A stretch of 64,000 nucleotides of DNA from Paraphysomonas bandaiensis. Lineage: Eukaryota > Protista > Chrysophyceae. The notes under the pieces are model-generated. The model worked only from the letters and a program-made list of their open reading frames with translations. It was not told where the DNA came from and did not search any database. The DNA is taken from positions 62,001 to 126,000 of the forward strand of contig CBFFRP010000138.1 in NCBI GenBank assembly GCA_965644295.1. Direction: 5' to 3'. How positions within the stretch are numbered: position 1 is the stretch's first letter; every line of letters begins with the position of its first letter. Position numbers and translations under genes: made by a program. This document shows positions 43,780-64,000 of this stretch, piece after piece.

Positions 43780-44065
43780 GTCGATCCATCACATGGATAT
43801 GTATAGTCCTGTGAACGAACAAGCCACTGCAGAACATCCAAGTGTCCACCTCTACCAGCAGCATTGCAGTGTCTGCATTCCAGAGACATTTAGGGTCCTA
43901 CGAACAAAGCCACTGTAAAACATCCAAGTATCCACTCCTGCAGCCTCGATGCATGTCTGTTCATTCCAGGGCATGGAAGGCCTTGTGAACGAAGCCACTG
44001 CATAACATCCACGTGCCCACCCATAGCAGCCATTATACAAGCTCCTGTCTCTTACAAGTCATCGG
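43780..44065 (-). pseudogene. Highly degenerate F-box/ankyrin-like repeat gene relic (copy E)
   Basis: F-box fragment (GATGACTTGTAAGAGAC) joined to decayed repeats (PWNEQTCIEAAG, GGHLDVLQWL) with frameshifts. Confidence 0.65.
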
Positions 44066-45294
44066 CACAAAACAGACTTGTGGGTTTTCTCCCAATATAA
44101 ACACTTATTATTACTGCTCAAGCACCTAACATGGTCAACAATATCCGCTAGATAACGAAGTACAGTATTGACTTTGATTGGAAAGTGGTCAAAAAAGCCA
44201 CTTTTAATGATCTAAATCCCTAAGAAATTGGAAATATGGGGTATTTAGGCCAACAGAATGATGTGTGCAGGTCAGGCTGAGGTGGATATGAGCCAGACTG
44301 CTTCGAGTTTTGATGCCTGTCCAGAATCTTTCAATCTGAGGGAGGGGTGAGTCCCACGCTTTTACTGGAGAGAGTATTTAGTACTGGGGTGATCCAAGGC
44401 AGTAGTGTCTCGCCCCGTGAGGCTTGAAGCCTTTCTTGTGCAATAGAATCGTGAGTACAGTCAAGTACCATATATATGTGTGAGAGAATCTAGCTGGTAG
44501 CCGCAATCGATGCAAGTGGTTTGTTTGTGTCAAGCCCACGACATGACCCTAACTCTGAGAGGACTGGGTACCACAGCTTCAAATCATATTCAGTATCAGA
44601 TGTGGCATATTCTTGAACGGTAGTGTATTTGTCCCTACTAAATTTAACCGACATTCCTACTAAACTAAAATGTAACCATTTGTTTCTACTAAATTTTGCT
44701 GACGTCCATATTAAAGTTAGAATATGACATAACTACATAACTGAACAAGATTATCACTCTATGCTGAGATTATAAGTTAGATAGTATATATAGTAACATT
44801 GGTGCTAGCGATCTGGTTGTATACGCGGTACTTCTTGGCGAGAATTATAAACTGAGAATCAGGTTGATGCTTTAAGGCTAAACAATAATACTAATAATAT
44901 ATTGTTTCTACACTTGTGTGTTGTGTGCTATTCGTGATACAACCTGTTGATGCATAGCGAGCCGTTACCAAGGTTATCAAACCGGGGCTCGCCATAATTT
45001 GGTGTTAACAATCGTCAGTCTTTGTTACTATACAGTATTTGTATCTATCGTACTTCTAAGAGAAACTATGAGGTATATTGTGATACTAAAACGTAAATCA
45101 TTTTTTTAATTTCATGAAATAATCTTAGAGTATACCTAAGTATATTATAAATACTATAGTATAAATAGGAGTGCAGACAGTAGATGCGACCTGTTTAAAC
45201 TACCAGTGTATAAAAAATACTACAAGGTATAATAGGGGTGCAGCCAGTGGATGTGAACGAAGCCACTTCAGAACACCCAAGAGTCCACCCATAG

Positions 45295-45790
45295 CATCCC
45301 ATGGACATGGAGGGTCCTGTACAAGAAGCAAGTTCAGCACATACAAGTGTCCACTACAAGCAGCCATAATCATAAGTCTGTGTATCCCATGGACATGGAG
45401 GGTCCTGGGCACGAAGCCACTTCAGAACATCCCAGTGTCCACCCATAGCAGTCATATCACAGTCCGCGCATCCCATGGACATGGAGGGTCCTGTACAAGA
45501 AGCAAGTTCAGCACATACAAGTGTCCACTACAAGCAGCCATAATCATAAGTCTGTGTATCCCATGGACATGGAGGGTTCTGGGCACGAAGCCACTTCAGA
45601 ACATCCCAGTGTCCACCCATAGCAGTCATATCACAGTCCGCGCATCCCATGGACATGGAGGGTCCTGTACAAGAAACAAGTTCAGCACATACAAGTGTCC
45701 ACTACAAGCAGCCATAATCATAAATCTGTGTATCCCATGGACATGGAGGGTTCTGGGCACGAAGCCACTTCAGAACATCCAAGTGTCCAC
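45295..45790 (-). repeat. 174-bp tandem unit (2 x 87 bp) present about 3 times at the gene 3' end
   Basis: Units start at 45295, 45469 and 45643. Each has one +1 and one -1 frameshifted repeat module. Confidence 0.88.
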
Positions 45791-47054
45791 CCATAGCAGC
45801 CATATCACAAATCCGTTCACCCCATGGACATGGAGGTTCCTGTGACCGAAGCCATTTCAAAACATCCAGGTGTCCTCCCATAGCAGCCATATTACAAGTT
45901 CCTGCATTCCATGGACATGGAGGGTCCTGTGCACGAAGCCACTTCAGAACATCCAAGTGTCCACCCATAGCAGCTTCGCGGCAAGTGTCTGCATCCCATG
46001 TACATGGAGGGTTCTGTGAACGAAGCCACTTCAGCACATCCAAATGTCCTCCCATAGCAGCCATATTACAAGTTCCTGCATTCCATGGACATGGAGGGTC
46101 CTGTACACGAAGCCACTTCAGAATATCAAAATGTCCTCCCATAGCTGCCATAGTACAAGTCTGTGCATCCCATGGACATGGAGGGTCCTGTGAACGAAGC
46201 CACTTCAGAACATCCAAGTGTCCACCCCTAGCAGCTTCGCGGCATGTGTCTGCATTCCATGGACAAGGAGGGTCCTGTGCACGAAGCCACTTCAGAACAT
46301 CCAGGTGCCCACCGAAAGCAGCCTTATCACAAGTTTCTTCATCCCATGGACATGGAGGGTCCTGTGAACGAAGCCACTTCAGAACATCCAAGTCACCACC
46401 CCTAGCAGCCATATTACAAGTCCGTTTACGCCATGGACATGGAGGGTCCTGTGAACGAAGCCACTTCAGAATATCCAGGTGCCCACCGAAAGCAGCCATA
46501 TCACAAGTTCTTGCATCCCATGGACATGGAGGGTCCTGTGAACGAAGCCACTTCAGAACATCCAAGTGTCCTCCCCAAGCAGCATTCCAGCAAGTGTCTG
46601 CACCCCATGTACAAGGAGGGTTCTGTGAACGAAGCCACTTCAGCACATCCAAGTGTCCACCCCTTGCAGCCATATTGTATGTCTTTGTATCCCATATGTG
46701 TGTTGGGTCCTCTGTATGTGTACGATGCCTTATGAGGAATTCCATCTGCTGTATTCTGCCGTATAGTGCGCATCTATTCATTATAAGCATGTGTGGGCAG
46801 CCCATAGACAGAGCCCATGAGACCATTGAGTTGGTCATACAGTAGTGAGATGCACGTGACTCAAGTCTCTCTCTGCTCTTGTCTCTCGTGCTATCAGCCA
46901 TATCGTGAAGTCTCTTACAAGTCATCATCACAGGAAGGAGAGCTGAGGGTGGGATCATAGAGATGACCAGACGAAGAACATCATCATTAAGATCAGCTAT
47001 ACTCGACATGTCAACACTGATAATACGCTGAGGGTGTGTGAGGCTCATATACAT
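45702..47054 (-). CDS. F-box + 29-aa ankyrin-like repeat protein, copy A (11 full repeats)
   Basis: N-terminal F-box-like IADLNDDVLRLVISMIPPSALLPVMMTCKRLH, then xxxTCxxAAxGGHLDVLKWLRSQDPPCPW repeats. Intronless. The real start may be the ATG at 47009. Confidence 0.85.
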   Translation of the reverse strand: MYMSLTHPQRIISVDMSSIADLNDDVLRLVISMIPPSALLPVMMTCKRLHDMADSTRDKSRERLESRASHYCMTNSMVSWALSMGCPHMLIMNRCALYGRIQQMEFLIRHRTHTEDPTHIWDTKTYNMAARGGHLDVLKWLRSQNPPCTWGADTCWNAAWGGHLDVLKWLRSQDPPCPWDARTCDMAAFGGHLDILKWLRSQDPPCPWRKRTCNMAARGGDLDVLKWLRSQDPPCPWDEETCDKAAFGGHLDVLKWLRAQDPPCPWNADTCREAARGGHLDVLKWLRSQDPPCPWDAQTCTMAAMGGHFDILKWLRVQDPPCPWNAGTCNMAAMGGHLDVLKWLRSQNPPCTWDADTCREAAMGGHLDVLKWLRAQDPPCPWNAGTCNMAAMGGHLDVLKWLRSQEPPCPWGERICDMAAMGGHLDVLKWLRAQNPPCPWDTQIYDYGCL

Positions 47055-47084
47055 GCACTACCAGATTGACATACATACACTCTG

Positions 47085-47239
47085 GGGGTGGTTGTGCATA
47101 TCGATTTCATCGATTTGTTGAAAAATCATCGTTTTCTCAGTGAAAAGTGAAAAAAAGTGACTTTTTAATGAAAAAACGATGATTTTTCGATGAAATAAAC
47201 GATGAACAAATCGATGAAATCGATATGCACAACCACCCC
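47085..47239. mobile_element. 155-bp MITE, PIF/Harbinger (Tourist)-like
   Basis: 35-bp perfect TIR GGGGTGGTTGTGCATATCGATTTCATCGATTTGTT and a 3-bp TSD CTG. The empty site CACTCTGACTAGAAC is seen in the paralogous upstream region at about 63885-63900. Confidence 0.9.
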
Positions 47240-47277
47240 CTGACTAGAACTATACTACGAATCGTATATGAGGATAC

Positions 47278-50200
47278 CAGTGCCCACCAAAACCCTGTAA
47301 TTCGCCAAAACCATGTAATTTTTTTTCATTTCAGTTTTCATAGTTTACATATGATTATGAATATTTTAAACTTTGTCACTCCGTATCTCTACTAATACGA
47401 AACCAACCACACATATCAACATATCCTCGTGTTCATCTTGCTCTGATCTTCCAACTTATCCAAATTGTTGTGGGGTTTGAGCTAAATACTTCTCCGTTCT
47501 GCCCCTCACATTTCACCTCTCCCGCAACTGAGATTCCACGATCCCAACCAACAGACACAGACTTTAAGTGATGGGAAATGGTGTGAATGGTGGGTGTTGT
47601 GAAAGTGGCGACATCTTACATCTGCTTGTCACCTCCCGTATGCTTCATCGTTGTGAATGTCACACTTATAGATCTCTCTGTCATATGCGTACTGCACATA
47701 TACACGTCTTAATACATATACATTGCTCAAACGTATATATATATGTGTTATATATGTACTGCGTACACATATATGTACGAATTATATGTATATGTCACAT
47801 ATATAAGTCTCTGTTACATACATGCTGCCCATATATATATGTGTGTGTCTCTGTCACAAATGTACTGCATATATATATATGTGCCATATGAATACTTCAC
47901 ACAAAAACACGTTTGTGACACATATATACTTCAAACATCTATGTATGTATGTCATATATAAACTGCAAGCTTATATATGTCTCTGTTACATATGTTGTGC
48001 GATATGTAGATATGTCATGTCTATGTTATATGTACACTGCACACATAAAGTGTATATCAGGGCTAGGGAACAATATATTGCAATACTATTGTGACGTATC
48101 GTCCCCCCAATACCTAGTTCAATTGTTTTTTAAGAGTCTATTGATACTATTACAATGTATTGCAATATACATATTACAATATATTGCAATAGTATTAATA
48201 TATATATACGTAGTCCGTAGCTAATTACTTACGTTCACTTCATTTCTAGTACTGTTTTTTAAGAGTGTATGAGCATATCACAAACTGTAATGCCTAACAC
48301 CATTCAAATACTCGCATTAACGCCATATTCACAATCTATGCCTTCAATTCACTACTATTTGAGAGATGTGTACATCAGGCCACAAGTGGCGATTAGCTCT
48401 CGAAAATAGAATCACATCAAGTGTATAGGGATGAGTACTTTTGCGCAGGACGGAGATGATAAGTGTAGCTACGCTGACTAATCTTTCACGTGTATTTGTC
48501 GTGCAGACAACATGACTAGTGTACCTGTACCTTGATTTTTAACTTTTTGCTTCTTCACTTTCTGGGAGGACTGTCCAACTCAGAATTTTTTATATTTAAT
48601 ATTGTTCTAACTTGCGATAATTAATATATTATGCATGTTGGGCAGTTACGGTTATTCATGGAGGGTAGGCTGCAGAATATGGTACGCAATAGTTGAGTCT
48701 GTACGTCTGAACTGTTCAATAGTAATTCGTAATTCCTACTTTCTACTTTCTATCGTCTCTTGACATATTTGGATGGTAAAACACCTTAATTAACTATACT
48801 TGAAGTCACACAGTATTAAAATTATAATCAACATCTCTCATTATTCATTGATATTCGTTACAATTACATTCTCTCAACTACCAAAAAATATTATCTTATC
48901 TTTATAGCCACGATCTTATACAGCCAAAGTGTTTCAGGTTCACTGCTTTAATTATCATTCTATCTTTAGTTCAACTAATACTGTATTCACGTATTCACTA
49001 CTACATTCTTCACGTAACAGCCATAATTCAGATACCTTTGAAATACAGGTTCTAAATGCTTACGAACAGCAAAACTCATCTCTTTCATCCGATGAGTAGT
49101 ATTAATAATATCGTCAACATCAATGATATTACATTACAAAAATGTAGCCTTAATTATATCTATGGTCTTTTTAATTAATAGCATGCATATAATTCTCGTG
49201 AGTTAGAATAATATTAAATATGAAAAATTCTGAGTTGGACACAGAAAGGTTGATATACAGTCCTTCCAGAAACTGAAGAATCGAAAAGTTGAGACATCAA
49301 GGTATCTATGAGCAATGAGCAAGGCTCTTCCATTTTTCTCTCTGGAAGATTTCATCAAGCTACGAGAGAATAGTGATGCAAAAGCTCTAAATTCGGTATG
49401 AGAGTTATGCATTTTTCGTGTACACTTCGGCCAAGTAATATAAGTTTTGCAGAATACATACAAGCTCAGTACACTACAAACAATATTCGTCACCTTTGAA
49501 GATCCGTCATCTTGGTAGAGATGTTTTGCTGTTTCTAGTACAGAGGTTCAAGAATTTATGCACCACCTACATGTTTTCAATCCAAAAGTGATCAACTTTA
49601 TGTCACTGTGGAATATCGCCTAGTTGATCGCTACATAGAACCCTATACCTTTAACTATGCTCACAAACTGCCTCCAAATCAATATAACAACGCATTACAG
49701 ATGATGTAAAGACACTATACTAGGCACGTCAAATACACGTGAAAGATTAGTCAGCGTAGCTACACTTATCATCTCCGTCCTGCGCAAAAGTACTCATCCC
49801 GATACACTTGATGTGATTCTATTTTCGAGAGCTAATCGCCACTTGTGGCCTGATGTACACATCTCTCAAATAGTAGTGAATTGAAGGCATAGATTGTGAA
49901 TATGGCGTTAATGCGAGTATTTGAATGGTGTTAGGCATTACAGTTTGTGATATGCTCATACACTCTTAAAAAACAGTACTAGAAATGAAGTGAACGTAAG
50001 TAATTAGCTACGGACTACGTATATATATATTAATACTATTGCAATATATTGTAATATGTATATTGCAATACATTGTAATAGTATCAATAGACTCTTAAAA
50101 AACAATTGAACTAGGTATTGGGGGGACGATACGTCACAATAGTATTGCAATATATTGTTCCCTAGCCCTGATATACACTTTATGTGTGCAGTGTACATAT

Positions 50201-50948
50201 AACATAGACATGACATATCTACATATCGCACAACATATGTAACAGAGACATATATAAGCTTGCAGTTTATATATGACATACATACATAGATGTTTGAAGT
50301 ATATATGTGTCACAAACGTGTTTTTGTGTGAAGTATTCATATGGCACATATATATATGCAGTACATTTGTGACAGAGACACACACATATATATATGGGCA
50401 GCATGTATGTAACAGAGACTTATATATGTGACATATACATATAATTCGTACATATATGTGTACGCAGTACATATATAACACATATATATATACGTTTGAG
50501 CAATGTATATGTATTAAGACGTGTATATGTGCAGTACGCATATGACAGAGAGATCTATAAGTGTGACATTCACAACGATGAAGCATACGGGAGGTGACAA
50601 GCAGATGTAAGATGTCGCCACTTTCACAACACCCACCATTCACACCATTTCCCATCACTTAAAGTCTGTGTCTGTTGGTTGGGATCGTGGAATCTCAGTT
50701 GCGGGAGAGGTGAAATGTGAGGGGCAGAACGGAGAAGTATTTAGCTCAAACCCCACAACAATTTGGATAAGTTGGAAGATCAGAGCAAGATGAACACGAG
50801 GATATGTTGATATGTGTGGTTGGTTTCGTATTAGTAGAGATACGGAGTGACAAAGTTTAAAATATTCATAATCATATGTAAACTATGAAAACTGAAATGA
50901 AAAAAAATTACATGGTTTTGGCGAATTACAGGGTTTTGGTGGGCACTG
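47278..50948. mobile_element. 3.67 kb foldback element with ~1.23 kb TIRs and 6-bp TSD
   Basis: Arms 47278-48504 and 49724-50948 are near-perfect inverted copies. Termini are CAGTG...CACTG, flanked by GGATAC on both sides. The empty site GAGGATACATCAACAC is present (reverse strand) at about 58540, 60385 and 63850. Confidence 0.9.
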
Positions 50949-51009
50949 GGATACATCAACACATATACGGTCTATGCGTATGTATGTACCTACAAAAAAT
51001 ACACGACAG

Positions 51010-51405
51010 CATACATATACATACATACATACATACATACATACATACATACATACATACATACATACATACATACATACATACATACATACATACATAC
51101 ATACATACATACATACATACATACGTACATACATACATACATACATACATACATACATACATACATACATACATACATACATACATACATACATACATAC
51201 ATACATACATACATACATACATACATACATACATACATACATACATACATACATACATACATACATACATACATACATACATACATACATACATACATAC
51301 ATACATACATACATACATACATACATACATACATACATACATACATACATACATACATACCTACATACATACATACATACATACATACATACATACATAC
51401 ATACA

Positions 51406-51435
<30 letters not shown>
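51010..51435. repeat. (ATAC)n microsatellite, ~425 bp
   Basis: About 105 nearly perfect tetranucleotide units. Confidence 0.98.
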
Positions 51436-51437
<2 letters not shown>

Positions 51438-51547
51438 AAGAGTGGATCGTAGAATGGTTCTATATCTCGTTCCCATTCTATCATATAACTCGATCTCATG
51501 ATAATCCACGTAGCCAGATAACACTCCCAAGATCCATTTATCTTCCA

Positions 51548-54500
51548 ATGGATAACGACAGTGAATCATCACTGTTTAACACTCATATAGAGATAATTAC
51601 ACATCAATTGAATGTATTAAGGAGTATGCGGTCATCTATGGAATGTACACACTGTAATAATGTTCCTGTATTACTTACACGTAGACTTGAAAACCGTATT
51701 GATAAATCACGTTTAATTGATGATTTTGAGATGGTATTATTGGGGATACTGGATGGGAGTGGTCAGATACAAGAGATGCATCGCTTGTCATTGTTTCTAT
51801 TACTTATGCATCGTGCGGTATGTATATATTGATATAAATATATGTGAATGATATATTATTGAATAGACTACAAATACGCATCGATTGTTATGTTTGCATG
51901 TTCTCAGACATCACACGACTGCAGAATGTCATACGGCTTTTATAAACAGTGGGGGTTTACTTGTCATTGCTGATTGGTTAAGTGTCGCTAACGCTAGCTC
52001 TAGCCGTTGTGGTTCTGTATTTATAGCAATATGCCGCACTCTAAGGATCTGCTGTGCGGACTATGTGCCCCCAAAGTTTCATATCATCATGAAGCAATTG
52101 ATCCGTTTGTATAAGTTTTACCAGAAGCAGGCCTGCGATGCAGAAGTGGATACTTCTGAAATTGCAGCAGGATTCAACGAGTTGACTACTCATTGGCAAT
52201 CTATTAAAGCCCCTGTTCGAGATACTGGGAAGTCTGACCAATCAGTCCAGATGAATGTAAATAATTCCGAGGTGGCAGACATCAAACCTGGTTACTCTGA
52301 TGTCAACCAATCGACAGAAACTGTACATCATCAGAGGTCGGAGAGTGTGGAGGTTGTGGAGGAGAATATTAAAGAGCCTGTTCGACCGACTAGTTCAATA
52401 ACCACGAAACTGACTATTGTGGAGAGTGAGCCCGCGCACTCGACTGAGGAACCGGTGCAGTCGACTGATGAGCCGGTGCAGTCGACTGATGAGTCCGCGC
52501 AGTTGACTGATGAGCCCACGCAGTCGACTGATGAGCCCATACAGCCGACTGCTGTAGAGTCCAGTCGTATAGTTGGGGATGAAAAGGATGAAGATCAGGT
52601 GAAGGGCGACAAATCTGTCTCGGATGAATTGACTCGAAAGGGCAATAATAGTATCTGCGTGCCTGCTCGAGTATTATCCACTCCCTCTGTCTACATGCGC
52701 AAAGTAGTGGAAAACACTTCTATTGAATCGCTAATTGCATTAAACAGCCCCAGAGGCACAAGGACTAGCACCCTTGGTATCATACCCATGCCCCAACGCC
52801 AACGGCCCCCTCCTGCCCGATCTGTCACTCCACCACCTGTTCGAAGTATCTTGAAACGCCCTTCAGCTGACGATTCCAGGAAAACCTCTGGACATAGAGT
52901 TGTTTTCGAGGAGGATGCCAATGGTAATGTCGTAGCAAAAACGTTGGTGTTCCAAGTGGACCACTGGATGGCAATGCGCAAGACATCCGACATAAAGAAA
53001 GAGGTTCATGAAAAGGTCTACAGAAATGTCGTTTGCAATTTTTATAAAACTTGACCCTATGTCGTGGTATAGACTTCTTTAAAAGCGCCAGCATTATCCC
53101 CGAGATGTGTTTGGTCTAGGTGTGTATGATGAAGCATTATCTTACGCCTGACGAAAGTATATGTATTGGGCAGGCCGGCATTGTTGAAGGAATCTGAAGA
53201 GCTCACGTGTAGTCATACCTCTGAGACTATTGCACAGCGTCGACGGATAATGCGTGTGGGGTGCGAGGCATTGTGAGTACCAGTATAGATTGTATTTTTG
53301 TGATAATAGGTTGGTAGATACGAGAGTGATGACAATATCCCCAGTGACCCCGAATACTCCTTTGATTCAGACGACGAACAGCATGCGAGTCCTACTATTG
53401 CTGTTGCACACATTGAGTGGCTTGTGGATAGCACTTGCGAAAGCAACATGAAGAAGGATGGTGCTGAAAGCGTAGGTGGCGCTCGTTGCCAAGGCAATCG
53501 AGAGTCTCCTCGCATTGATGTATTGGACCGTGCTACGAATGACTGTGAGTATTTTGAAACCTTCATGTTGGTTCAGCTGTAATAGTTGCAATATCAGCTA
53601 TTGTACTGGAGTCGCCAACCTCGCCAACCTCCCTTGGTATCAGTGAAGATAATGACAAGATCAGACCTAAAGTAAAATGTCGATACTTCAGTACGGCAAA
53701 GGGCTGCAGTGATGGGGACAAATGTAAGTTCCTCCATGAGAGCCCTCCGACAGAAGAATCTGAAAACCAACTGAGAGTGAAAGAAGTTCGCATGCGACTG
53801 GCCAATATCTTGAGAGATGCAGGACCCAATGGCTTGAAGTCTTCTGAGATTAGATCTAGGTAGTCCCTCTTCTCCATCTGTACTGTGATGTTGTTTAGTG
53901 ATTACTGAGTAGGTATTTTGAGCTCTATGGTGAAAATGTAGACACTAGAGACGCTAAAGGGTGTCGTGTTCCGCTCCGCGAACTCTTGATTAGCCATCCT
54001 GATATTAGCGGAGCTCGTGCTGAATCTGGCAGCAGCGTTCCCGCTGCTTTCACGCATAGTGCTACTTCTATCCAACCTACGGAAAGAATTGCTGCATCAG
54101 ATGAAAGAGGCCCTGCAGATAGCTATAATGTGTGCTATCGTTGTGTTGTGTGTGACATTGTCTTTAATATTAATGTTAGGCTAAATTGAAATCTCTCCGG
54201 GTCCAACTGGTGGGTATACTTAGAGAATCTGGGCGTCTAGGTATAAAAGGAAGTTTAATTCCAAAAAGGTACACTGTGTTTTTTTCTTGGAGTACTGTAA
54301 TAAATGCACCAGGTATCAAGATCTGTACGGCACGAAGTTGGACATTGTTGACAAGCATGGAAAAAAGCGTCAACTCAAAGACTTTCTTCTTTCGATAGAT
54401 GGAGTTGAGGTTGATGCTTCGTCGGGTGGAGATGTGACATTCAAACTCACTGACTGCCGCCCCCCCATAGCACCTCTAACAAGTAAGCGTCACGTTCAGA

Positions 54501-54859
54501 GTGTTGCCAAGGACGTGTCCAATACGCCGTGTATCGACCACTCACGACGAGAGTCTGGCTGCCGTAGAGGAAGCTTGTGTGGATTTCGCCATGATGATTC
54601 CCAGAGAGAGAACATGTTGCGTAGATCGGAGCGTGATCGTAGTAGCGATAGACAACGAACAGAGAGAGATAGCAGTGGAGTTCTTCACAACGATAGACGG
54701 AAGCGCAGTCGGAACAGAAGCCACAGCCCGAGTGACAGTCGCTCAGTGAGGCGAAAAGAGGATCGAAGCTCCGCGCGTGTCCTTTGCAAGTACTTTAATC
54801 CAAGAACGGGCTCTGGATGTAAATACGGGGATTCCTGTCGATATCTTCATCCGATATAG
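51548..54859 (+). CDS. PNUTS/PPP1R10-like PP1-interacting protein with CCCH zinc fingers and putative LOTUS (OST-HTH) domains, multi-exon
   Basis: TFIIS-N-like GGLLVIADWL segment. RSILKR..GHRVVF..TLVF (SILK, RVxF and phi-phi PP1 docking motifs). CCCH fingers CRYFSTAKGCSDGDKCKFLH, CRRGSLCGFRH and CKYFNPRTGSGCKYGDSCRYLH. Two Y..LYG..L...LR/K.LL segments and an RS-rich region. Confidence 0.7.
52426..52550 (+). repeat. 21-bp coding tandem repeat (STDEPVQ-like, about 6 copies)
   Basis: GTCGACTGATGAGCCGGTGCA-type units inside the large exon. Confidence 0.85.
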
Positions 54860-56059
54860 CTGACATGATATCCGTAATGTATTTAAGGTTTATATTTTAG
54901 TGCAGGTTTTAGGTCGTTGTTATTCGAAACCTTTGTATTTTTCGTAACTCAAACGTTGTGTGAGATTTTGTTGTTCCTCACTGCCAAATAAAATCCTCTA
55001 TATATATGTAGCTGCATGAAGTACTACATCGTACACTGTTGAGTTTTGCTCAATATTGAACCATTAAAGGCTATATTTAGTAAGCAGTAGGCAATCTTTG
55101 TTTTGTAGCGCTGTGATTTTCGTGATCATGTGATCTTAATAAACATAAGCATATTAACTGATCAATACATACATGAATATATAAAAGAAAAAACACAGCA
55201 AGAATAATGTTAACCTTAAATGCTATTTCTTTTTTACTGAAAGTATTGTCTTCAATTCGATGTGAGTACCATACATTGGAAAAATATAATAATATTAAAC
55301 ATTATATAGAAAAGTGTAATATAAGTGCATATTTGAAAACAACATTGAGTCATGGTAGTCGATGTGTTTTTAAGTATTTAAAAATCATTAAATTGAGAGT
55401 AGAGCAATCAAAATTTTATATGTATGTAGAGTAGACAACTGATGTGTGAACTAGAGAAGCAATCGAACTTAATTATATATATCTTATATTTATAAATAAT
55501 AATTAATGCGAGACACAGAAAGACCATCTACACACACACAAGTACGGTGATCGTATGCATATGCACGCGCAGAGTACGTATACACGCAACATCGTACCTA
55601 TATACAGTGTAATCGTACGTATGCTCGGTATACAGTATACAGTGGAATGAGAAGGATCTCATACTCTAACTTTAAGAAACAATGATTAAATATTAGACAC
55701 AATTCACGAAGTTTTTAAAACAGCTGCAGAAAGAGTTGAACACTATCCGGATAGTATTATGTATTTAACACATTTTCATAATTTTTATATGATCACATTG
55801 CAAAACGTTATAATATAATATATATTAATATTATTTATTTATTAAGTACTAACTATATAGAATTACCTCGACAACAGTGTAAAATGGTATCCTCCCAAAT
55901 GATATAGAATTGTAGAAATCCTTAGGATAAAGGTACGGTAGTATATTGGTAGTGGCAGTAGTACAAGATTACACCTAATTGTCCATTCTAACACCTAACA
56001 CAATAATAGTGGTCTGTGTTAAGTGTTAAGATTTGCACTGCACACTGAAGTAGCCGTTA

Positions 56060-56680
56060 AGATTCAAATTTAGTAATCCTACTGCCACATATCCAGCTCA
56101 CTGCCCGAACATCAGTTCCACGTCCTCGAAAAATCCGTAACCTCTATCCTCCTTCCCCTATATGATGGAGGGCTCCGCATGCTTAGAAACAGAGGTCTCA
56201 GACATCACAATACCGACACGGCACCAGTAAAGCCGATAACGACCCCCCCACACTCACAGCAACGCCAGGCACAGGATATTCACCCGACACCAAAAATACT
56301 CCAACTACTCCAAGCGACATCCACCCCAAGAACTCTATCCTCTGCAAGAGTCCGAACCCGACAGAGACAAGCGCAACCACTCCGGAAACAACTCCTCCTT
56401 ACCTGTGGCGGAAATCCCACCTCGACAACCAGCACCATCTCCACCACCGACTTACACTCTCACATACACCTATAGCCCCAACCATCCCCCGTAAAACCCA
56501 TGCCAGACACATTGCCCAAAGGCAGACCCCCCGACTAACCTCACTACAAGGGACGCTTGCACCATGGTGCTCGCAGCGATGCACAAGCAGTCCCGAGACG
56601 GTTGCCCGCCACTAGTCGTATATAGCAAGTCCAGTTATTAGTTAGTTTATATTAGTTAGTTAATCTAGTTTCTGTACACA
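56060..56680 (+). mobile_element. Putative non-LTR retroelement 3' relic
   Basis: C/A-rich, GC-elevated island ending in a variant of the shared GCACC(A/T)TGGTGCT..GCACAAGCAG motif, followed by a TTAG-like tail. No recognisable protein domain. Confidence 0.35.
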
Positions 56681-57203
56681 ACCGTTCTCATGTAATAATC
56701 AGATATTCTCAAAGTAATCCTACTTGCAGTACGTAATACTCACAACACGTACATATACCGTAGTTAGACCAAATATTGAGTAAAGCAAACTGAAAGTAAT
56801 TATAATCGTGAGTTTAAGTCTAATCAATATGTCAAAATCTAAATGTTCTTGTTCAACAGACAATAACTTTCTTAATTGATATGAAACCATTGCACTAGGA
56901 CATAATTCTCTGCTTACTTCTCAGATACGGCCACACCGGGTAGTGCACGACACAAGTGAACAGGGAACTATTGACTATACCAACAATACAAGGAGAAAAG
57001 TTCACAATAGCAATGTTGTCATTATTAATTGTGTATCAAAACTGCAATAAAAGATCACACACTAGTGACTACCATCTGAAACATCGTATCAGAATTTTCG
57101 ATGCTTGAAGTGCTTAATCATATCATGTCATTATCGGGCACTACATTATACCTGTTAACTACATTAGACTAGGCACCGAGATAGATAGCAGGATAACAGT
57201 GTA

Positions 57204-57983
57204 TTAATCTTGCTTGACATTGGAGTTGGCGTTGCCTGCAACAAACACACATACGAAAAATTAAAGCAGGAGGAGTATTACATATTTGCTTCTAAGTTGA
57301 CTACACCAAATTGACACATTTTGACACTAATCCAACACAGGACTGTGGAGAGCATGACATCATTGTAGAGTCAGGTCTTACCGTTGATTCCAAGGGCGGG
57401 AACAACATGTTCTTTAATGATAGCATCATACAAGACAGTCGCGCCCTACAAAACAGATGCAATACACGTCACATACCGCATTTAAATTTGCTGCAATATA
57501 CTTACATTAAAAGACGGGTGGTAGCACCAAATAAGGAAAGCAATCTTCAAGAGGAAGTAGAATGGGACATTCCGAATAATGATATCAGCCACAGACTCCA
57601 CAATCTAAACGAAACAACGTTGAGAAACATTAAATATTGACCAGATAGTTGCGAATGTGTACCTTGAATTGAGTGAAAATGATCCAGTAAGTCAGCCACT
57701 GTTTGTCATCATTAGCATCTGGGCTCTCAATAGCCTTAAGAGAGGCATAAAGAGGATACACGAAACCAACAATATCTCTATAAAACATCACATAATGACT
57801 CATGTATATGAATATACTCATCTACTCACATTATCAGACTGACTCCGACTGCTAAAAATACGAGTAACCTACATACATATATATAACTCTAGGTAATCAA
57901 ATGACACTATGTATGTACCCTATGATCGCAAGAGCACCAACGAATATATATTCCTTATCAATTTTCGTCTTCTCAGATGCCAT
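57204..57983 (-). CDS. REEP/Yop1/HVA22 (TB2/DP1) family ER-shaping protein, multi-exon
   Basis: DIVGFVYPLYASLKAIESPDANDDKQWLTYWIIF..ECPILLPLED/PFYFLLKIAFLIWCYHP..GATVLYDAIIKEHV. Start MASEKTK, end NVKQD*. Confidence 0.9.
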
Positions 57984-58590
57984 TTCAAGGTATTTATTAA
58001 ATGGATACTTCTCAATAAAGACTGTTAATTTTTTCTATAATAATGAATATATTTCTATAAATTTTAATGATATTCATGTAAAGTATTACCTTGTACACTT
58101 CAATATCAAATCCCATGGTTGAAATATATCTGGATGATGTAATCTATTTGATTGTTATGGTTAAGTGATTCTATATGGAATTTTACATAGAGATCATAGT
58201 CGAATATATTCGAGATCCTCTTATCATATAGAAAAACACGTTAAGAAATAATCATGTAAGGTCATCTTACTATAGACATCTATCCACACATATGGTTAGA
58301 TGGTTAGTCTACACATTTTTCCTATAGGAAAAAACTAAGAAAATCAGAAGAAGCCTTCTTCACCTCAAGTTGTGTTCTTCAGATCTTTAAAGGTCACACC
58401 TTTTTCAGTGATGGTTTGGTCACCAATACTACGAATAATATCTTGATATCACATTTTTTTAGGGGTTTAGTTCATTAATAGTGGCTTTTTTGACCAGATT
58501 GATGAAAGTCAGTATAACGCAGTATTTGGGAGGGCAGGTGTGTTGATGTATCCTCATATACGATTCGTAGTATAGTTCTACTCAGAGTGT

Positions 58591-59838
58591 ATGGATGTCA
58601 ATCTGTATATGAGCCTCACACACCCTCAGCGTATTATCAGTGTTGACATGTCGAGTGTATCTGATCTTAATGATGATGTTCTTCGTCTGATCATCTCTAT
58701 GATCCCACCCTCAGCTCTCCTTCCTGTGATGATGACTTGTAAGAGACTTCACGATATGGCTGATAGCACGAGAGACAAGAGCAGAGAGAGACTTGAGTCA
58801 CGTGCATCTCACTACTGTATGACCAACTCAATGGTCTCATGGGCTCTGTCTATGGGCTGCCCACACCTCAAACTAATGAATACATGTGCACTATACGGCA
58901 GAATACAGCAGATGGAATTCCTCATAAGGCATCGTACACATACAGAGGACCCAACACACATATGGGATACAAAGGCATACAATATGGCTGCAAGGGTTAG
59001 ACACTTGGATGTGCTGAGGTGGCTTCGTTCACAGCACCGTCCATGTCCATGGGGTGCAGACACTTGCTGGAATGCTGCTAGGGGCGGACACTTGGATGTG
59101 CTGAAGTGGCTTCGTTCACAGGACCCTCCTTGTCCATGGGATGCACGGACTTGTGATATGGCTGCTTTCGGTGGGCACCTGGATATTCTGAAGTGGCTTC
59201 GTTCACAGGACCCTCCTTGTCCATGGGATTCACGGACTTGCTGCGAAGCTGCTAGGGGTGGACACTTGGATATTCTGAAGTGGCTTCGTTCACAGGACCC
59301 TCCTTGTCTATGGGATGCACAGACTCGTGGTGTGGCAGCTATCGGAGGACATTCTGATATTCTTAAGTGGCTTCGTGTACAGGACCCTCCATGTCCATGG
59401 AATACATTAACTTGTTGTATGGCTGCTATGGGAGGACACTTGGATGTGCTGAAGTGGCTTCGTTCACAGGACCCTCCATGTCCATGGGATGCAGACGCTT
59501 GCCGCGAAGCTGCCTTGGCTGGTCACTTGGATGTTCTGAAGTGGCTTCGTGCACAGGACCCTCCATGTCCATGGGATGAAGAAACTTGTGATATGGCTAC
59601 TTTGGGTGGACACTTGGATGTTCTGAAGTGGCTTCGTGCACAGGACCCTCCATGTCCATGGGATACACGGATTTGTGATATGGCTGCTTGGGGAGGACAC
59701 TTGGAGGTTTTAAAATGGCTTCGTTCACAGGACCCTCCATGTCCATGGGATGAAGAGACTTGTAATATGGCTGCTATGGGTGGACACTGGGATGTTCTGA
59801 AGTGGCTTCGTTCACAGGACCCTCAATGTCGAATGTAG
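58591..59838 (+). CDS. F-box + 29-aa ankyrin-like repeat protein, copy B (10 repeats)
   Basis: N-terminus nearly identical to copy A, with a different order and content of repeats. Intact ORF. The real start may be the ATG at 58648. Confidence 0.85.
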   Translation: MDVNLYMSLTHPQRIISVDMSSVSDLNDDVLRLIISMIPPSALLPVMMTCKRLHDMADSTRDKSRERLESRASHYCMTNSMVSWALSMGCPHLKLMNTCALYGRIQQMEFLIRHRTHTEDPTHIWDTKAYNMAARVRHLDVLRWLRSQHRPCPWGADTCWNAARGGHLDVLKWLRSQDPPCPWDARTCDMAAFGGHLDILKWLRSQDPPCPWDSRTCCEAARGGHLDILKWLRSQDPPCLWDAQTRGVAAIGGHSDILKWLRVQDPPCPWNTLTCCMAAMGGHLDVLKWLRSQDPPCPWDADACREAALAGHLDVLKWLRAQDPPCPWDEETCDMATLGGHLDVLKWLRAQDPPCPWDTRICDMAAWGGHLEVLKWLRSQDPPCPWDEETCNMAAMGGHWDVLKWLRSQDPQCRM

Positions 59839-60438
59839 AAGCTTGTAATATGGTTACTAGGGGAGGTACATTCGCAACAGTAAGAAGGGTTAGGGTCATG
59901 TCGTGGGCTTGACACAAACAAAACCACTTGCATCGATTGCGGCTACCAGCTAGATTCTCTCACACATATATATGGTACTTGACTGTACTCACGATTCTAT
60001 TGCACAAGAAAGGCTTCAAGCCTTACGGGGCGAGACACTACTGCCTTGGATCACCCCAGTACTAAATACTCTCTCCAGTAAAAGCGTGGGACTCACCCCT
60101 CCCTCAGATTGAAAGATTCTGGACAAGCATCAAAACTCGAAGCAGTCTGGCTCATATCCACCTCAGCCTGACCTGCACACATCATTCTGTTGGTCTAAAT
60201 ACCCCATATTTCCAATTTCTTAGAGATTTAGATCACTAAAAGCGGCTTTTTTGACCACTTTCTAATCAAAGTCAATACTGCACTTCTGTGCGTGTATTTT
60301 TTGTCCCCACCTGCCATCAAGTACACATAGACCGTATATGATGACATGCATCATACTGCTGTAGTATGTCCAGGGAGGGCAGTGTGTTGATGTATCCTCA
60401 TATACGATTCGTAGTATAGTTCTACTCAGAGTGTATGT

Positions 60439-61520
60439 ATGTCAATCTTGTATATGAGCCTCACACACCCTCAGCGTATTATCAGTGTTGACATGTCGAG
60501 TGTATCTGATCTTAATGATGATGTTCTTCGTCTGATCATCTCTATGATCCCACCCTCAGCTCTCCTTCCTGTGATGATGACTTGTAAGAGACTTCACGAT
60601 ATGGCTGATAGCACGAGAGACAAGAGCAGAGAGAGACTTGAGTCACGTGCATCTCACTACTGTATGACCAACTCAATGGTCTCATGGGCTCTGTCTATGG
60701 GCTGCCCACACATGCTTATAATGAATGGATGCGCACTATATGGCAGAATACAGCAGATAGAATTCCTCATAAGGCATCGTGCACATATACAGAGGACCCA
60801 ACACACATATGGGATACAAAGACATACAATATGGCTGCTCTGGGTGGACACTTGGATGTGTTGAAGTGGCTTCGTTCACATGACCCTCCATGTCCATGGG
60901 ATGCACGGACTTGTGATATGGCTGCTTGGGGAGGACACTTGGGTGTGCTCAGGTGGCTTCGTTCACAGGACCCTCCATGTCCATGGGATTCTTAACTTGC
61001 CGCGAAGCTGCTATGGGCGGACACTTTGATGTTCTGAAGTGGCTTCGTTTACAGGACCCTCTATGTCCATGGGATGCACGGATTTGCGATATGGCTGCTC
61101 TGGGTGGGCATCTGGATGTTCTGTAGTGGCTTCGTTCACAGGACCCTCCATGTCCATGGGGTGAACGGATTTGTGATATGGCTGCTATGGGTGGACACTT
61201 GGATTTTCTGAAGTGGCTTCGTTCACAGGACCCTCCATGTCCATGGGATGCATGGACTATGGCTGCTATGGGTGGACACTTGGATATTCTGAAGTGGCTT
61301 CGTTCACAGGACCCTCCATGTCCATGGGATACATGGACTTATGATTATGGCTGGTAGTAGTGGACACTTGTATGTGCTGAACTTGCTTCATTCACAGGAC
61401 CCTCGTTGTTCATGGAATACAGAAACTTGCCGCGAAGCTGCTATGGGTGGACACTTTGGTGTTCGTTTGGATGTTCTAAAGTGGCTTCGTTCACAAGATC
61501 CTCAATGTCGAATATAGAAA
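60439..61520 (+). pseudogene. F-box + ankyrin-like repeat gene, copy C (frameshifted)
   Basis: +2 frameshift near 60790, -1 frameshift near 60992, in-frame TAG at 61124 and further indels. Confidence 0.85.
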
Positions 61521-61979
61521 ATTCAAACATGGTTGCTAGGGGAGGTTTATTCACAACGGGAGGAGGGAGATTCTTCGAATCTGTAGTGGTACACACTGGT
61601 AGTATAAGCTGGTCACATCTACTGGCTGCACCCCTATTATACCTTGTAGTATTTTTTATACATTGGTAGTTTAAACAGGTCGCATCTACTGTCTGCACTC
61701 CTATTTATACTATAGTGTTTATAATATACTTAGGTATACTCTAAGATTTAGTTTTACGTTTTAGTATCACAATATACCTCATTCTTTCCCTTAGAAGTAC
61801 GATAGATACAAATACTGTATAGTAACAAAGACTGGCGATTGTTAACACCAAATTATGGCGAACCCCGGTATGATAACCTTGGTAACGGCTCGCTATGCAT
61901 CAACAGGTTGTATCACGAATAGCACACAACACACAAGTTAGAGACAGTGTATTATTAGTATTATTGTTTAGTCTAAAAG

Positions 61980-62979
61980 ATAAGGTTTTATTGCGGCCCG
62001 CAAGGGCCCTCGGCCCTCTAAAATTAATTTTTTTTCAGTTTTAGCCTCCTGAAGATTTTGATTTGTTATATTATTTCAGTTATTGTCTAAAGATTTCGAG
62101 TTTTGAAAAAAGAAATGTGATTGGTTTTTAATTTTGACTTTTTGAAAACTTAGTACAAATTCATTAATAATTTTGTCATCAAGCAGGCGATTAATAATGC
62201 ATGATTCTAATTCAGAAGAATCAGGGAGAAAAGATAGTTGTAATAGCGATGATCTCCCTACAACTTTTCAGCGGGAAGGTTTCAGATACACTATCAAGCA
62301 GAGGAAGAGGCTTCAAGATGGTTCGGTATAATACATTCTCTATCAGTAAGCCACTGATCCTTATATTTAGGAAATTTGAAGGGTTATTATCGGTGCTCAA
62401 AGCACCGGAAAGGAAGAACATGTGGCTGTCCAGCTAAATTGACAATTCTTGTTAACGAGCAAGCAGAAGAATCTGATGAAAAACTGATAATTTCAAAGAG
62501 GAAAGAGGAGCACAAATGTGGTGCCGCCACCTTTATATTGCCTTCAGATTCACCAACATCTGATGATAATTCCAAGGAGAGGTCGTCGTTTTGTAAAGAT
62601 GTATATGACACAAGTGGTGAAATGAAACAACTAATCGAATAGTTGTGAAGCAATGGCGTTGAAAGATGTTTCGAAGTCCTCCATTGCGATTGCAAATGAA
62701 GTTGCGGAAACAACGCGAGCGAAATATAAGCAGCTCGGTGAGAAAATTGATATCTTTATTTTTGCTGTTTTCACTTCATTTTCTTTTGCTTATTTCGGTA
62801 GGAATGCCATATAGATATCTCGAAACGTCAAAACACAAAGCTTTGGTGCATCAGTGTAGACGTTTAGAGTTCAATGCTTGTAGTTGTAGTGTGTGTTGTG
62901 CGTGTTTTTAATTAAGAATTATTGTTATTATTGTTAGTTGTAGTAGAGGGCCAAATGCGGGCCAAAATTAAATTTTTCC
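61980..62979 (+). mobile_element. Non-autonomous Mutator-like element (MULE) with transposase zinc-finger remnant
   Basis: 9-bp TSD GTCTAAAAG (61971-61979 and 62980-62988). Empty site in the paralogous segment at about 44870. Imperfect TIRs with GGCCCGCA..GGCCCTCTA. ORF GYYRCSKH...CGCPAKL...EEHKC is a WRKY/FLYWCH/FAR1-type finger. Confidence 0.88.
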
Positions 62980-63921
62980 GTCTAAAAGCATCAACCTGAT
63001 TCTCAGTTTATAATTCTCGCCAAGAAGTACCGCGTATACAACCAGATCGCTAGCACCGATGTTACTATATATAATATATCTAACTTATAATCTCAGCATA
63101 GAGTGATAATCTTGTTCAGTTATGTAGTTATGTCATATTCTAACATAGTTGGCTCAGCTTCCATTTTTAATGCAATATAGACGTCAGCAAAATATAGTAG
63201 AAACAAATGGTTACATTTTAGTTTAGTAGGAATGTCGGTTAAATTTAGTAGGGACAAATACACTACCGTTCAAGAATATGCCACAGCCATCTGATACTGA
63301 ATATGATTTGAAGCTGTGGTACCCAGTCCTCTCACAGTTAGGGTCATGTCGTGGGCTTGACACAAACAAAACCACTTGCATCGATTGCGGCTACCAGCTA
63401 GATTCTCTCACACATATATATGGTACTTGACTGTACTCACGATTCTATTGCACAAGAAAGGCTTCAAGCCTTACGGGGCGAGACACTACTGCCTTGGATC
63501 ACCCCAGTACTAAAGACTCCCTCCAGTAAAAGCGTGGGACTCACCCCTCCCTCAGATTGAAAGATTCTGGACAGGCATCAAAACTCGAAGCAGTCTGGCT
63601 CATATCCACCTCAGCCTGACCTGCACACATCATTCTGTTGGTCTAAATACCCCATATTTCCAATTTCTTAGAGATTTAGACCATTAAAAGCGGCTTTTTT
63701 GACCACTTTCCAACCAAAGTCAATACTGTGTACTTCTGTCGTGTATTTTTTGTACCCACCTGCCATCAAGTACACTGTAGGTACATACATACGCATAGAC
63801 CGTATATGGTGACATGCAATCATACTGCTGTATGTTCAGGAGGGCAGTGTGTTGATGTATCCTCATATACGATTCGTAGTGTAGTTCTAGTCAGAGTGTA
63901 TGTATGTCAATCTGGTAGTGC

Positions 63922-64000
63922 ATGTATATGAGCCTCACACACCCTCAGCGTATTATCAGTGTTGACATGTCGAGTATAGCTGATCTTAATGATGATGTTC
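63922..64000 (+). CDS. F-box + ankyrin-like repeat gene, copy D (5' end only; runs off the window)
   Basis: MYMSLTHPQRIISVDMSSIADLNDDV is identical to the start of copy A. Confidence 0.75.
   Translation, partial: MYMSLTHPQRIISVDMSSIADLNDDV

Follow-up and report, generated by a model that had tools for sequence, protein, structure and literature searches.

Pandoraviridae carry expansions of ankyrin, MORN and F-box proteins (10.1101/230904), Bodo saltans virus has a 148-copy ankyrin "accordion" (PMC5871332), and the green alga Bathycoccus prasinos holds a 149-copy ankyrin family, HOM000035, whose N-terminus has no database match and which has no assigned function (PMC3491373). Here we describe a cluster of genes in the chrysophyte Paraphysomonas bandaiensis whose proteins join an N-terminal F-box to ankyrin-like repeats of 29 residues. 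The window, by which we mean the whole stretch of 64,000 nucleotides that was analysed, is positions 62001-126000 of contig CBFFRP010000138.1 (C138:62001-126000); own-genome searches cover the 62.5-Mb assembly. In our preferred reading, to which we give a probability of roughly 0.6, the cluster belongs to a lineage-specific family of about 70 loci that encodes substrate receptors of Skp1-cullin-F-box (SCF) ubiquitin ligases, carries a variable helix face and diversifies in the germline.

The giant-virus families (Pandoraviridae, metagenome-assembled genomes (MAGs), Bodo saltans virus) resemble this one in having short CPW ankyrin-like repeats after an F-box-like motif at the N-terminus (10.1101/230904; PMC5871332). 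Tandem duplication, strain-specific copies and the same variable repeat positions (2, 3, 6, 7 and 10) are also common to both. However, the viral period is mostly 27 residues, while the Paraphysomonas genes lie in a cellular genome, in a host context, and have an N-terminal module with almost no detectable relatives. HOM000035 likewise expanded in a single marine protist lineage and has its ankyrin repeats at the C-terminus as well as tandem duplicates, but it belongs to a green alga and no F-box or variable-face analysis is reported for it; this comparison is by description only.

In 2006 Thomas reportedly found positive selection in nematode and plant F-box superfamilies. For nematode F-box families positive selection is described in PMC8120010; the nematode and plant superfamilies resemble the present family in comprising hundreds of lineage-specific SCF adaptors, with selection focused on the substrate-binding domain and a proposed anti-pathogen role (PMC8120010). 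Their binding domains are, however, FTH, FBA, Kelch or leucine-rich repeats (LRR), and they have no solenoid with fixed variable positions. Poxvirus ankyrin/F-box proteins are SCF adaptors (PMC9414399). According to PMC9414399 and to Sonnberg 2008 as cited in PMC5871332, ankyrin repeats in poxvirus ANK/PRANC proteins and Legionella AnkB are fused to an F-box, by which the host SCF complex is recruited via Skp1. These are pathogen effectors, however, not host genes, and the poxvirus proteins have a C-terminal F-box and canonical 33-residue ankyrins. In the literature we found no description of this F-box/29-residue-repeat family or of its variable face.

The gene family and its window cluster

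Five copies, A to E, are present in the window. They had been recognised in the initial annotation, whose coordinates for A and B agree exactly with the list of open reading frames (ORFs). TRF stands for Tandem Repeats Finder.

43815-44011, minus strand: copy C, the degenerate remains of about 2.3 repeats, with neither F-box nor open frame (TRF period 85, 2.3 copies, 76% matches)
45702-47054, minus strand: gene A, an intact single-exon ORF of 450 amino acids; F-box at residues 20-57 (about 46884-46997)
58591-59838, plus strand: gene B, an intact single-exon ORF of 415 amino acids; F-box at residues 24-61 (about 58660-58773); 10 repeats
60439 to about 61518, plus strand: pseudogene E, with an N-terminal frame intact for 141 amino acids and frameshifted repeats after it (from translations and a motif scan by frame)
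63922-64000, plus strand: start of gene D (MYMSLTHPQR...), which leaves the window and reaches about C138:127619; 15 repeats, including a duplicated three-repeat block

C, taken for a pseudogene before, translates into broken repeats, e.g. VMQWLRSQGLPC. E is a pseudogene, as had been proposed, because its repeats change frame and hold an in-frame stop: they run in frame 2, in frame 1 (stop near 61118) and in frame 2 again, with at least three frame changes. D is partial in the window, as noted before. The contig holds four further copies past this point, and the cluster goes on through D, F, G and H to about C138:140172. The ORFs of A, B, D, F, G and H are complete in the germline.

The proteins consist of an F-box and an ankyrin-like repeat solenoid, which bears out the architecture first suggested. 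Pfam finds ankyrin matches (Ank_4 4.6e-38, Ank_2 1.7e-20), and the F-box (PF00646) scores 19.7 bits in A, 21.9 in B and 23.6 in the N-terminus of E, against a cut-off of 20.5. Downstream of the F-box, a short charged linker leads to the block SHYCMTNSMVSWAL.MGCPH...CALYGRLQQM, which reads as two degenerate repeats that would act as an N-terminal cap. In A this two-unit cap is followed by 11 repeats of 29 residues and the C-cap WDTQIYDYGCL; the C-termini of the proteins have a conserved half-repeat, WD..YDYG. The repeats, 8 to more than 60 per protein, make up a separate interaction domain C-terminal to the F-box. They are not canonical ankyrins: the unit has 29 residues instead of 33, TC stands in place of TPLH, and the beta-hairpin finger is lacking. 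Successive motifs are 29 residues apart in 322 pairs, and most other spacings equal a multiple of 29 or come close to one.

In the genome a full-length query has at least 159 matches. With the 105-residue N-terminus as query there were 94, 69 of them at an E-value of at most 3.5e-25, and 63 of these 69 best matches lie in open frames of at least 357 amino acids without an internal stop. Extraction of 66 loci yielded 70 repeat-bearing ORFs, most of which (59) carry both conserved N-terminal blocks. The N-terminal module occurs at about 70 loci, and the longest open frames, of 2280 (C2:186006-192329) and 1563 amino acids (C218:58139-62809), hold dozens of repeats. Since the copies are mostly intact open frames dispersed over more than 60 contigs, the family is one of mostly intact genes and not a decaying satellite. 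All examined genes of the family are intronless, and so are four cytosolic HSP70 genes (C426, C264 twice, C290).

Expression data come from collapsed Logan contigs, in which 1396 of the 1764 mapped pieces fit two places and the copies are not rankable. In one RNA-like read run the depth is zero at 58134-58535, which is intergenic, and reads are present from 58536; a polyA marine metatranscriptome contains pieces with at least 95% identity. Transcription of the family is thereby suggested only. Searches of the genome for rbcL and light-harvesting (LHC) genes found neither, which fits a colourless phagotrophic chrysophyte. One intronless HSP70 gene shows 97% identity to a Paraphysomonas transcript (MMETSP1103) and 86% to Mallomonas.

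Variable and constant positions of the repeat

Positions within the repeat follow the numbering of the initial annotation. All entropies are calculated from 840 ungapped full-length repeats, which were extracted by a profile search.

Position 6: 3.68 bits
Position 3: 3.56 bits
Position 10: 3.42 bits
Position 7: 2.86 bits
Position 2: 2.41 bits
Position 11: 2.21 bits
Position 18: 1.90 bits (K/Q/R)
Position 1: 1.88 bits (D/N/G/S, classical helix N-cap residues)
Remaining positions: at most 1.35 bits, most below 0.7

The variation is concentrated, as the initial annotation had stated, and not evenly spread over the codons. It had named positions 1-3, 6-7 and 10; these are indeed variable in the 840 repeats, but the set omits 11 and 18, and position 1 takes only D, N, G or S. 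At the three most variable positions (3, 6 and 10), R, D/E, W and Y are frequent. In the scaffold the entropy is below 1 bit except at positions 4, 15 and 18.

To place these positions in a structure we used an AlphaFold2 model of A, with an alignment of 52 paralogs and relatives (mean predicted local distance difference test score, pLDDT, 88.3; predicted template modelling score 0.80; repeats at pLDDT 94-98). In the modelled repeat, which contains no strand, helix 1 covers positions 2-10 and is followed by a turn, helix 2 (positions 14-22) and a loop of eight residues. The variable positions 2, 3, 6, 7 and 10 fall inside an arc of about 140 degrees on helix 1, with the conserved 4, 5, 8, 9 and 12 opposite. 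In this predicted geometry the hypervariable positions are confined to one helix-1 face of a constant scaffold, in agreement with the earlier expectation of a single surface, and stacked repeats would therefore show one continuous variable stripe. A fold search of the PDB gave ankyrins, designed ankyrin repeat proteins (DARPins) and designed pentatricopeptide repeat solenoids at template modelling (TM) scores of 0.2-0.56. These matches are of a generic alpha-solenoid kind; they confirm the fold class of the model and point to no specific relative.

The arrangement had been likened to a natural DARPin library, and the best PDB sequence match is in fact a DARPin (6mol_A, 3.9e-13). In both cases the repeat scaffold is constant apart from a few variable positions per repeat, which stack into one binding surface, putative in the present family. 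The likeness holds in part: positions 2, 10 and 11 align with the randomised DARPin positions 5, 13 and 14, but positions 3, 6 and 7 correspond to the TPLH framework, which is absent from the 29-residue repeats. Further, DARPins have a 33-residue unit with TPLH and a beta-hairpin, and the superposition is loose, within the TM range given above.

For selection we compared dN/dS (omega) in scaffold and variable codons. Counting by Nei-Gojobori (NG86) over 481 nearest-neighbour repeat pairs gives a scaffold omega of 0.28 (bootstrap confidence interval, CI, 0.25-0.31). Codon models in IQ-TREE were run class by class with scaled branch lengths, and every one of them puts the scaffold at 0.25-0.38. 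The variable class comprises seven codons, with the following values of omega.

Counting (NG86), all seven codons: 1.37-1.43 (CI 1.24-1.69, 481 nearest-neighbour pairs)
Counting, positions 3, 6 and 10: 1.71 (CI 1.53-1.93)
GY+F1X4: 1.76-2.35 (twice the log-likelihood difference, 2dlnL, 26-29 versus omega = 1)
MGK+F3X4: 1.29-1.46
GY+F3X4 and GY+F (poorer fit): 0.93-1.25
Local cluster alone: 1.0

These substitution patterns point clearly to purifying selection on the scaffold. The variable face appears to evolve at or somewhat above the neutral rate, and positive selection on it is not secure: the diversifying selection proposed at first is matched by estimates up to 2.3, but others go down to 0.93, and to 1.0 in the local cluster. 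With a constrained scaffold beside such a face, a neutral satellite is refuted and positive selection is not securely established. The N-terminal module has an omega of 0.53-0.61 genome-wide.

A coding satellite that decays without selection could be suspected from the 87-bp arrays (TRF: 45294-46675, 58982-59830 and 60829-61464), which are satellite-like, and from the stop-containing units duplicated 3' of A. It is contradicted by the position-specific pattern together with the synonymous excess in scaffold codons: the scaffold omega is about 0.3, the variation depends strongly on position, and long open frames are found at most loci. We regard it as extremely improbable.

A different proposal is that the proteins do function, as SCF adaptors or as ankyrin scaffolds of a generic kind, but that their variable positions are merely unconstrained surface, drifting neutrally, while duplication and decay enlarge and shrink the family, with no arms race and no non-self targets. 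The omega of 1.0 in the local cluster and the 0.93-1.25 under GY+F3X4 and GY+F agree with this, pseudogenes and ragged 3' ends are common locally, and large plant F-box families that drift in size are known (PMC7829749). However, counting and the best-fitting codon models give 1.3-2.3, with 2dlnL of 26-29 against omega = 1, about 90% of the loci have long open frames with a scaffold omega near 0.3, and the viral relatives vary at the same positions. All in all we find neutral drift unlikely, though by no means negligible.

Germline duplication and viral relatives

The genes of the cluster are accompanied by spacers, and A by a tail of repeats.

44157-44522, minus strand: spacer specific to the cluster, inverted relative to its copies at 59921-60286 and 63369-63729 (98% complementary)
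45294-45701, minus strand: untranslated tail of A, three 174-bp units (from the TRF array, which reaches 45294, and three-frame translation)
59889-60188, plus strand: spacer within the tandem duplication unit, 99% identical to 63337-63636
63337-63729, plus strand: spacer upstream of D (from direct and inverted repeats and the own-genome DNA search)

In the own-genome DNA search, matches to the spacer at 93-100% identity are confined to the C138 cluster, and the last 60-85 nt before each ATG are common to all local copies; this shared segment is a candidate promoter or 5' untranslated region. B is 95% identical to A over its first 637 nt (an inverted repeat) and mosaic beyond. The module signatures agree: D equals G plus a duplicated three-repeat block, while A and B have modules one to three in common and differ after that. 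Between homologous modules most differences fall at the variable positions. Each 174-bp unit 3' of the A stop consists of one in-frame repeat with C-cap and stop and one out-of-frame repeat, and because all three carry the C-cap and stop, the stop-containing unit has itself been tandemly duplicated.

Copies thus arise by tandem segmental duplication, unequal crossing-over and mosaic recombination. Together with module gain and loss and the pseudogenes, this is the birth-and-death evolution that had been suggested. Retroposition was considered as a source of the intronless genes and is rejected for the local cluster, since the flanking spacers were duplicated along with the genes. The N-termini had been called nearly invariant. 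Locally they are, at 89-98% identity, but as the synonymous divergence (pS 0-0.036) is also near zero, we read this as a sign of young copies and not of a special constraint.

The analogy to the variable lymphocyte receptors (VLRs) of lampreys finds no support in its mechanism. Both systems derive diversity for recognition from repeat modules, but VLRs are assembled somatically from LRR cassettes, whereas the genes here are complete in the germline, and the read contigs contain nothing interpretable as rearrangement.

More than 3700 proteins match the repeats, none at more than 66% identity; they come from Chloropicon, Seminavis, Tribonema, Balamuthia, Raphidocelis, chrysophyte transcriptomes and many metagenomes. 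For N-terminal residues 1-125 a word-based search gave no match. A profile search with the N-terminal module among 1.84 billion representatives gave 27 hits, mostly weak and one strong; those looked up are all metagenome proteins without a name, and several of them have the same architecture. IMG/VR contains 169 stretches that encode relatives, and many of these lie on pandoravirus genomes and giant-virus MAGs. Their ORFs start with F-box-like motifs and continue with mostly 27-residue CPW repeats (GGHLEVLQWAREHGCPW...), adjacent motifs being 27 residues apart in 86 pairs and 29 in 4, and the five positions named at the outset (2, 3, 6, 7 and 10) are again variable. The presence of related short CPW repeats in giant viruses and small algae, stated in the initial annotation, is borne out. 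A few viral ORFs mix 27- and 29-residue units, which indicates that the two lengths interconvert in single genes.

Endogenised giant-virus F-box/ankyrin genes, or hitch-hikers on mobile DNA, without a host function could in principle have produced the family. It is intronless while the Skp1 gene has two introns, the N-terminal F-box with 27/29-residue CPW repeats occurs in pandoraviruses and giant-virus MAGs (the 169 stretches above), and a foldback transposon adjoins A. On the other hand, the copies are dispersed singly over more than 60 contigs, and the local unit is a plain segmental tandem repeat whose spacer is not a dispersed element. Within the genome the N-terminal module is conserved (omega 0.53-0.61, as above), and among the 1.84 billion other proteins it is nearly absent. 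A search of the genome for the capsid of nucleocytoplasmic large DNA viruses (PF04451) also gave no match, although it was silent in control genomes as well and so has no positive control. A viral or selfish origin appears to us very unlikely.

Some further observations concern the cluster and its surroundings. H is followed by a 150-residue ORF of further repeats in another frame, overlapping the end of H (C138:140300-140752); like A, H has an untranslated or frameshifted repeat tail. Contigs from three read runs join 59884 to 61569 with TAGTG between them and skip all of E; they may come from a haplotype or strain without E, or from a paralog with the same 3' flank. A foldback element at 47274-50952 separates A from the rest of the cluster. 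It has two nested arm pairs (47274-47881/50345-50952 and 47871-48504/49724-50357) that are 100% complementary. Positions 51017-51435 are occupied by an almost perfect (ATAC)n microsatellite (about 105 units, 99% matches) with long spurious ORFs on both strands. A low-complexity 389-residue ORF at 51885-53054 (plus strand), unrelated to the F-box family, contains a 21-bp coding repeat of six units (TDEP.QS-like) at 52427-52551.

Predicted Skp1 docking and a putative receptor repertoire

The Skp1 gene of the genome has three exons and two very short introns (C421:88094-91237, minus strand). Residues 1-135 of B were co-folded with the last Skp1 exon (83 residues, helices H5-H8), along with three controls. 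The interface score ipSAE is 0.72 for B with Skp1 and 0.00 for the best control; the same mark is reached by 51 of 78 solved complexes and by 2 of 108 mismatched pairs. At least 89% of contacts are common to the runs, the partner has a pLDDT of at least 76, and the interface lies at residues 22-54, that is, at the F-box. The F-box is thus predicted to dock on host Skp1; the co-fold supports a likeness to known Skp1/F-box complexes and does not show binding.

We propose that the N-terminal F-box would dock on Skp1 and be followed by the degenerate two-repeat cap and a solenoid of two-helix repeats of 29 residues. Positions 4, 5, 8, 9 and 12-29 would form the conserved scaffold, while 2, 3, 6, 7, 10 and 11 would lie on the exposed helix-1 face, whose stacked stripe we take as the target-binding surface. 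Docking and face geometry are both model predictions. New specificities might arise by four routes: germline tandem duplication of a 3.4-kb unit of gene and spacer, gain or loss of repeat blocks within genes through unequal crossing-over, mosaic recombination between paralogs, and substitution on the variable face, either unconstrained or under positive selection. Some copies would decay. Bound proteins would be ubiquitinated, and we infer that the targets may be rapidly evolving non-self proteins of giant viruses, intracellular bacteria or prey.

It should be kept in mind that several points weigh against this proposal. The F-box score of A is just below the Pfam cut-off, the co-fold used the last Skp1 exon only, and its result may reflect memory of solved Skp1/F-box complexes. 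The surface exposure of the variable positions is deduced from helix phase in the model. Positive selection at these positions is not robust: the poorer-fitting models and the local cluster listed above give values around neutrality, and recombination among repeats violates the tree model. The expression evidence is weak, with collapsed contigs and mostly multi-mapping pieces.

A more specific version of the receptor proposal is that the family is a germline innate-immune repertoire of a phagotrophic protist, whose helix face would capture giant-virus or intracellular-bacterial proteins and send them to the proteasome via SCF. The viral F-box/CPW families would then be captured copies turned on the host, either as Skp1 competitors or as counter-receptors, and because they would be captured host copies the same positions would be variable in host and virus. 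We put this forward as a speculation that is, on balance, distinctly unlikely.

The defences of free-living protists against giant viruses and intracellular bacteria are poorly understood. The large ankyrin families of picoalgae and giant viruses were noted before and left without function; the model presented here is concrete and testable. As a natural minimal repeat scaffold, the 29-residue mini-ankyrin may also interest protein engineers. Even if the variable face is merely unconstrained, the family would still be a clear case of birth-and-death evolution of SCF adaptors in stramenopiles.

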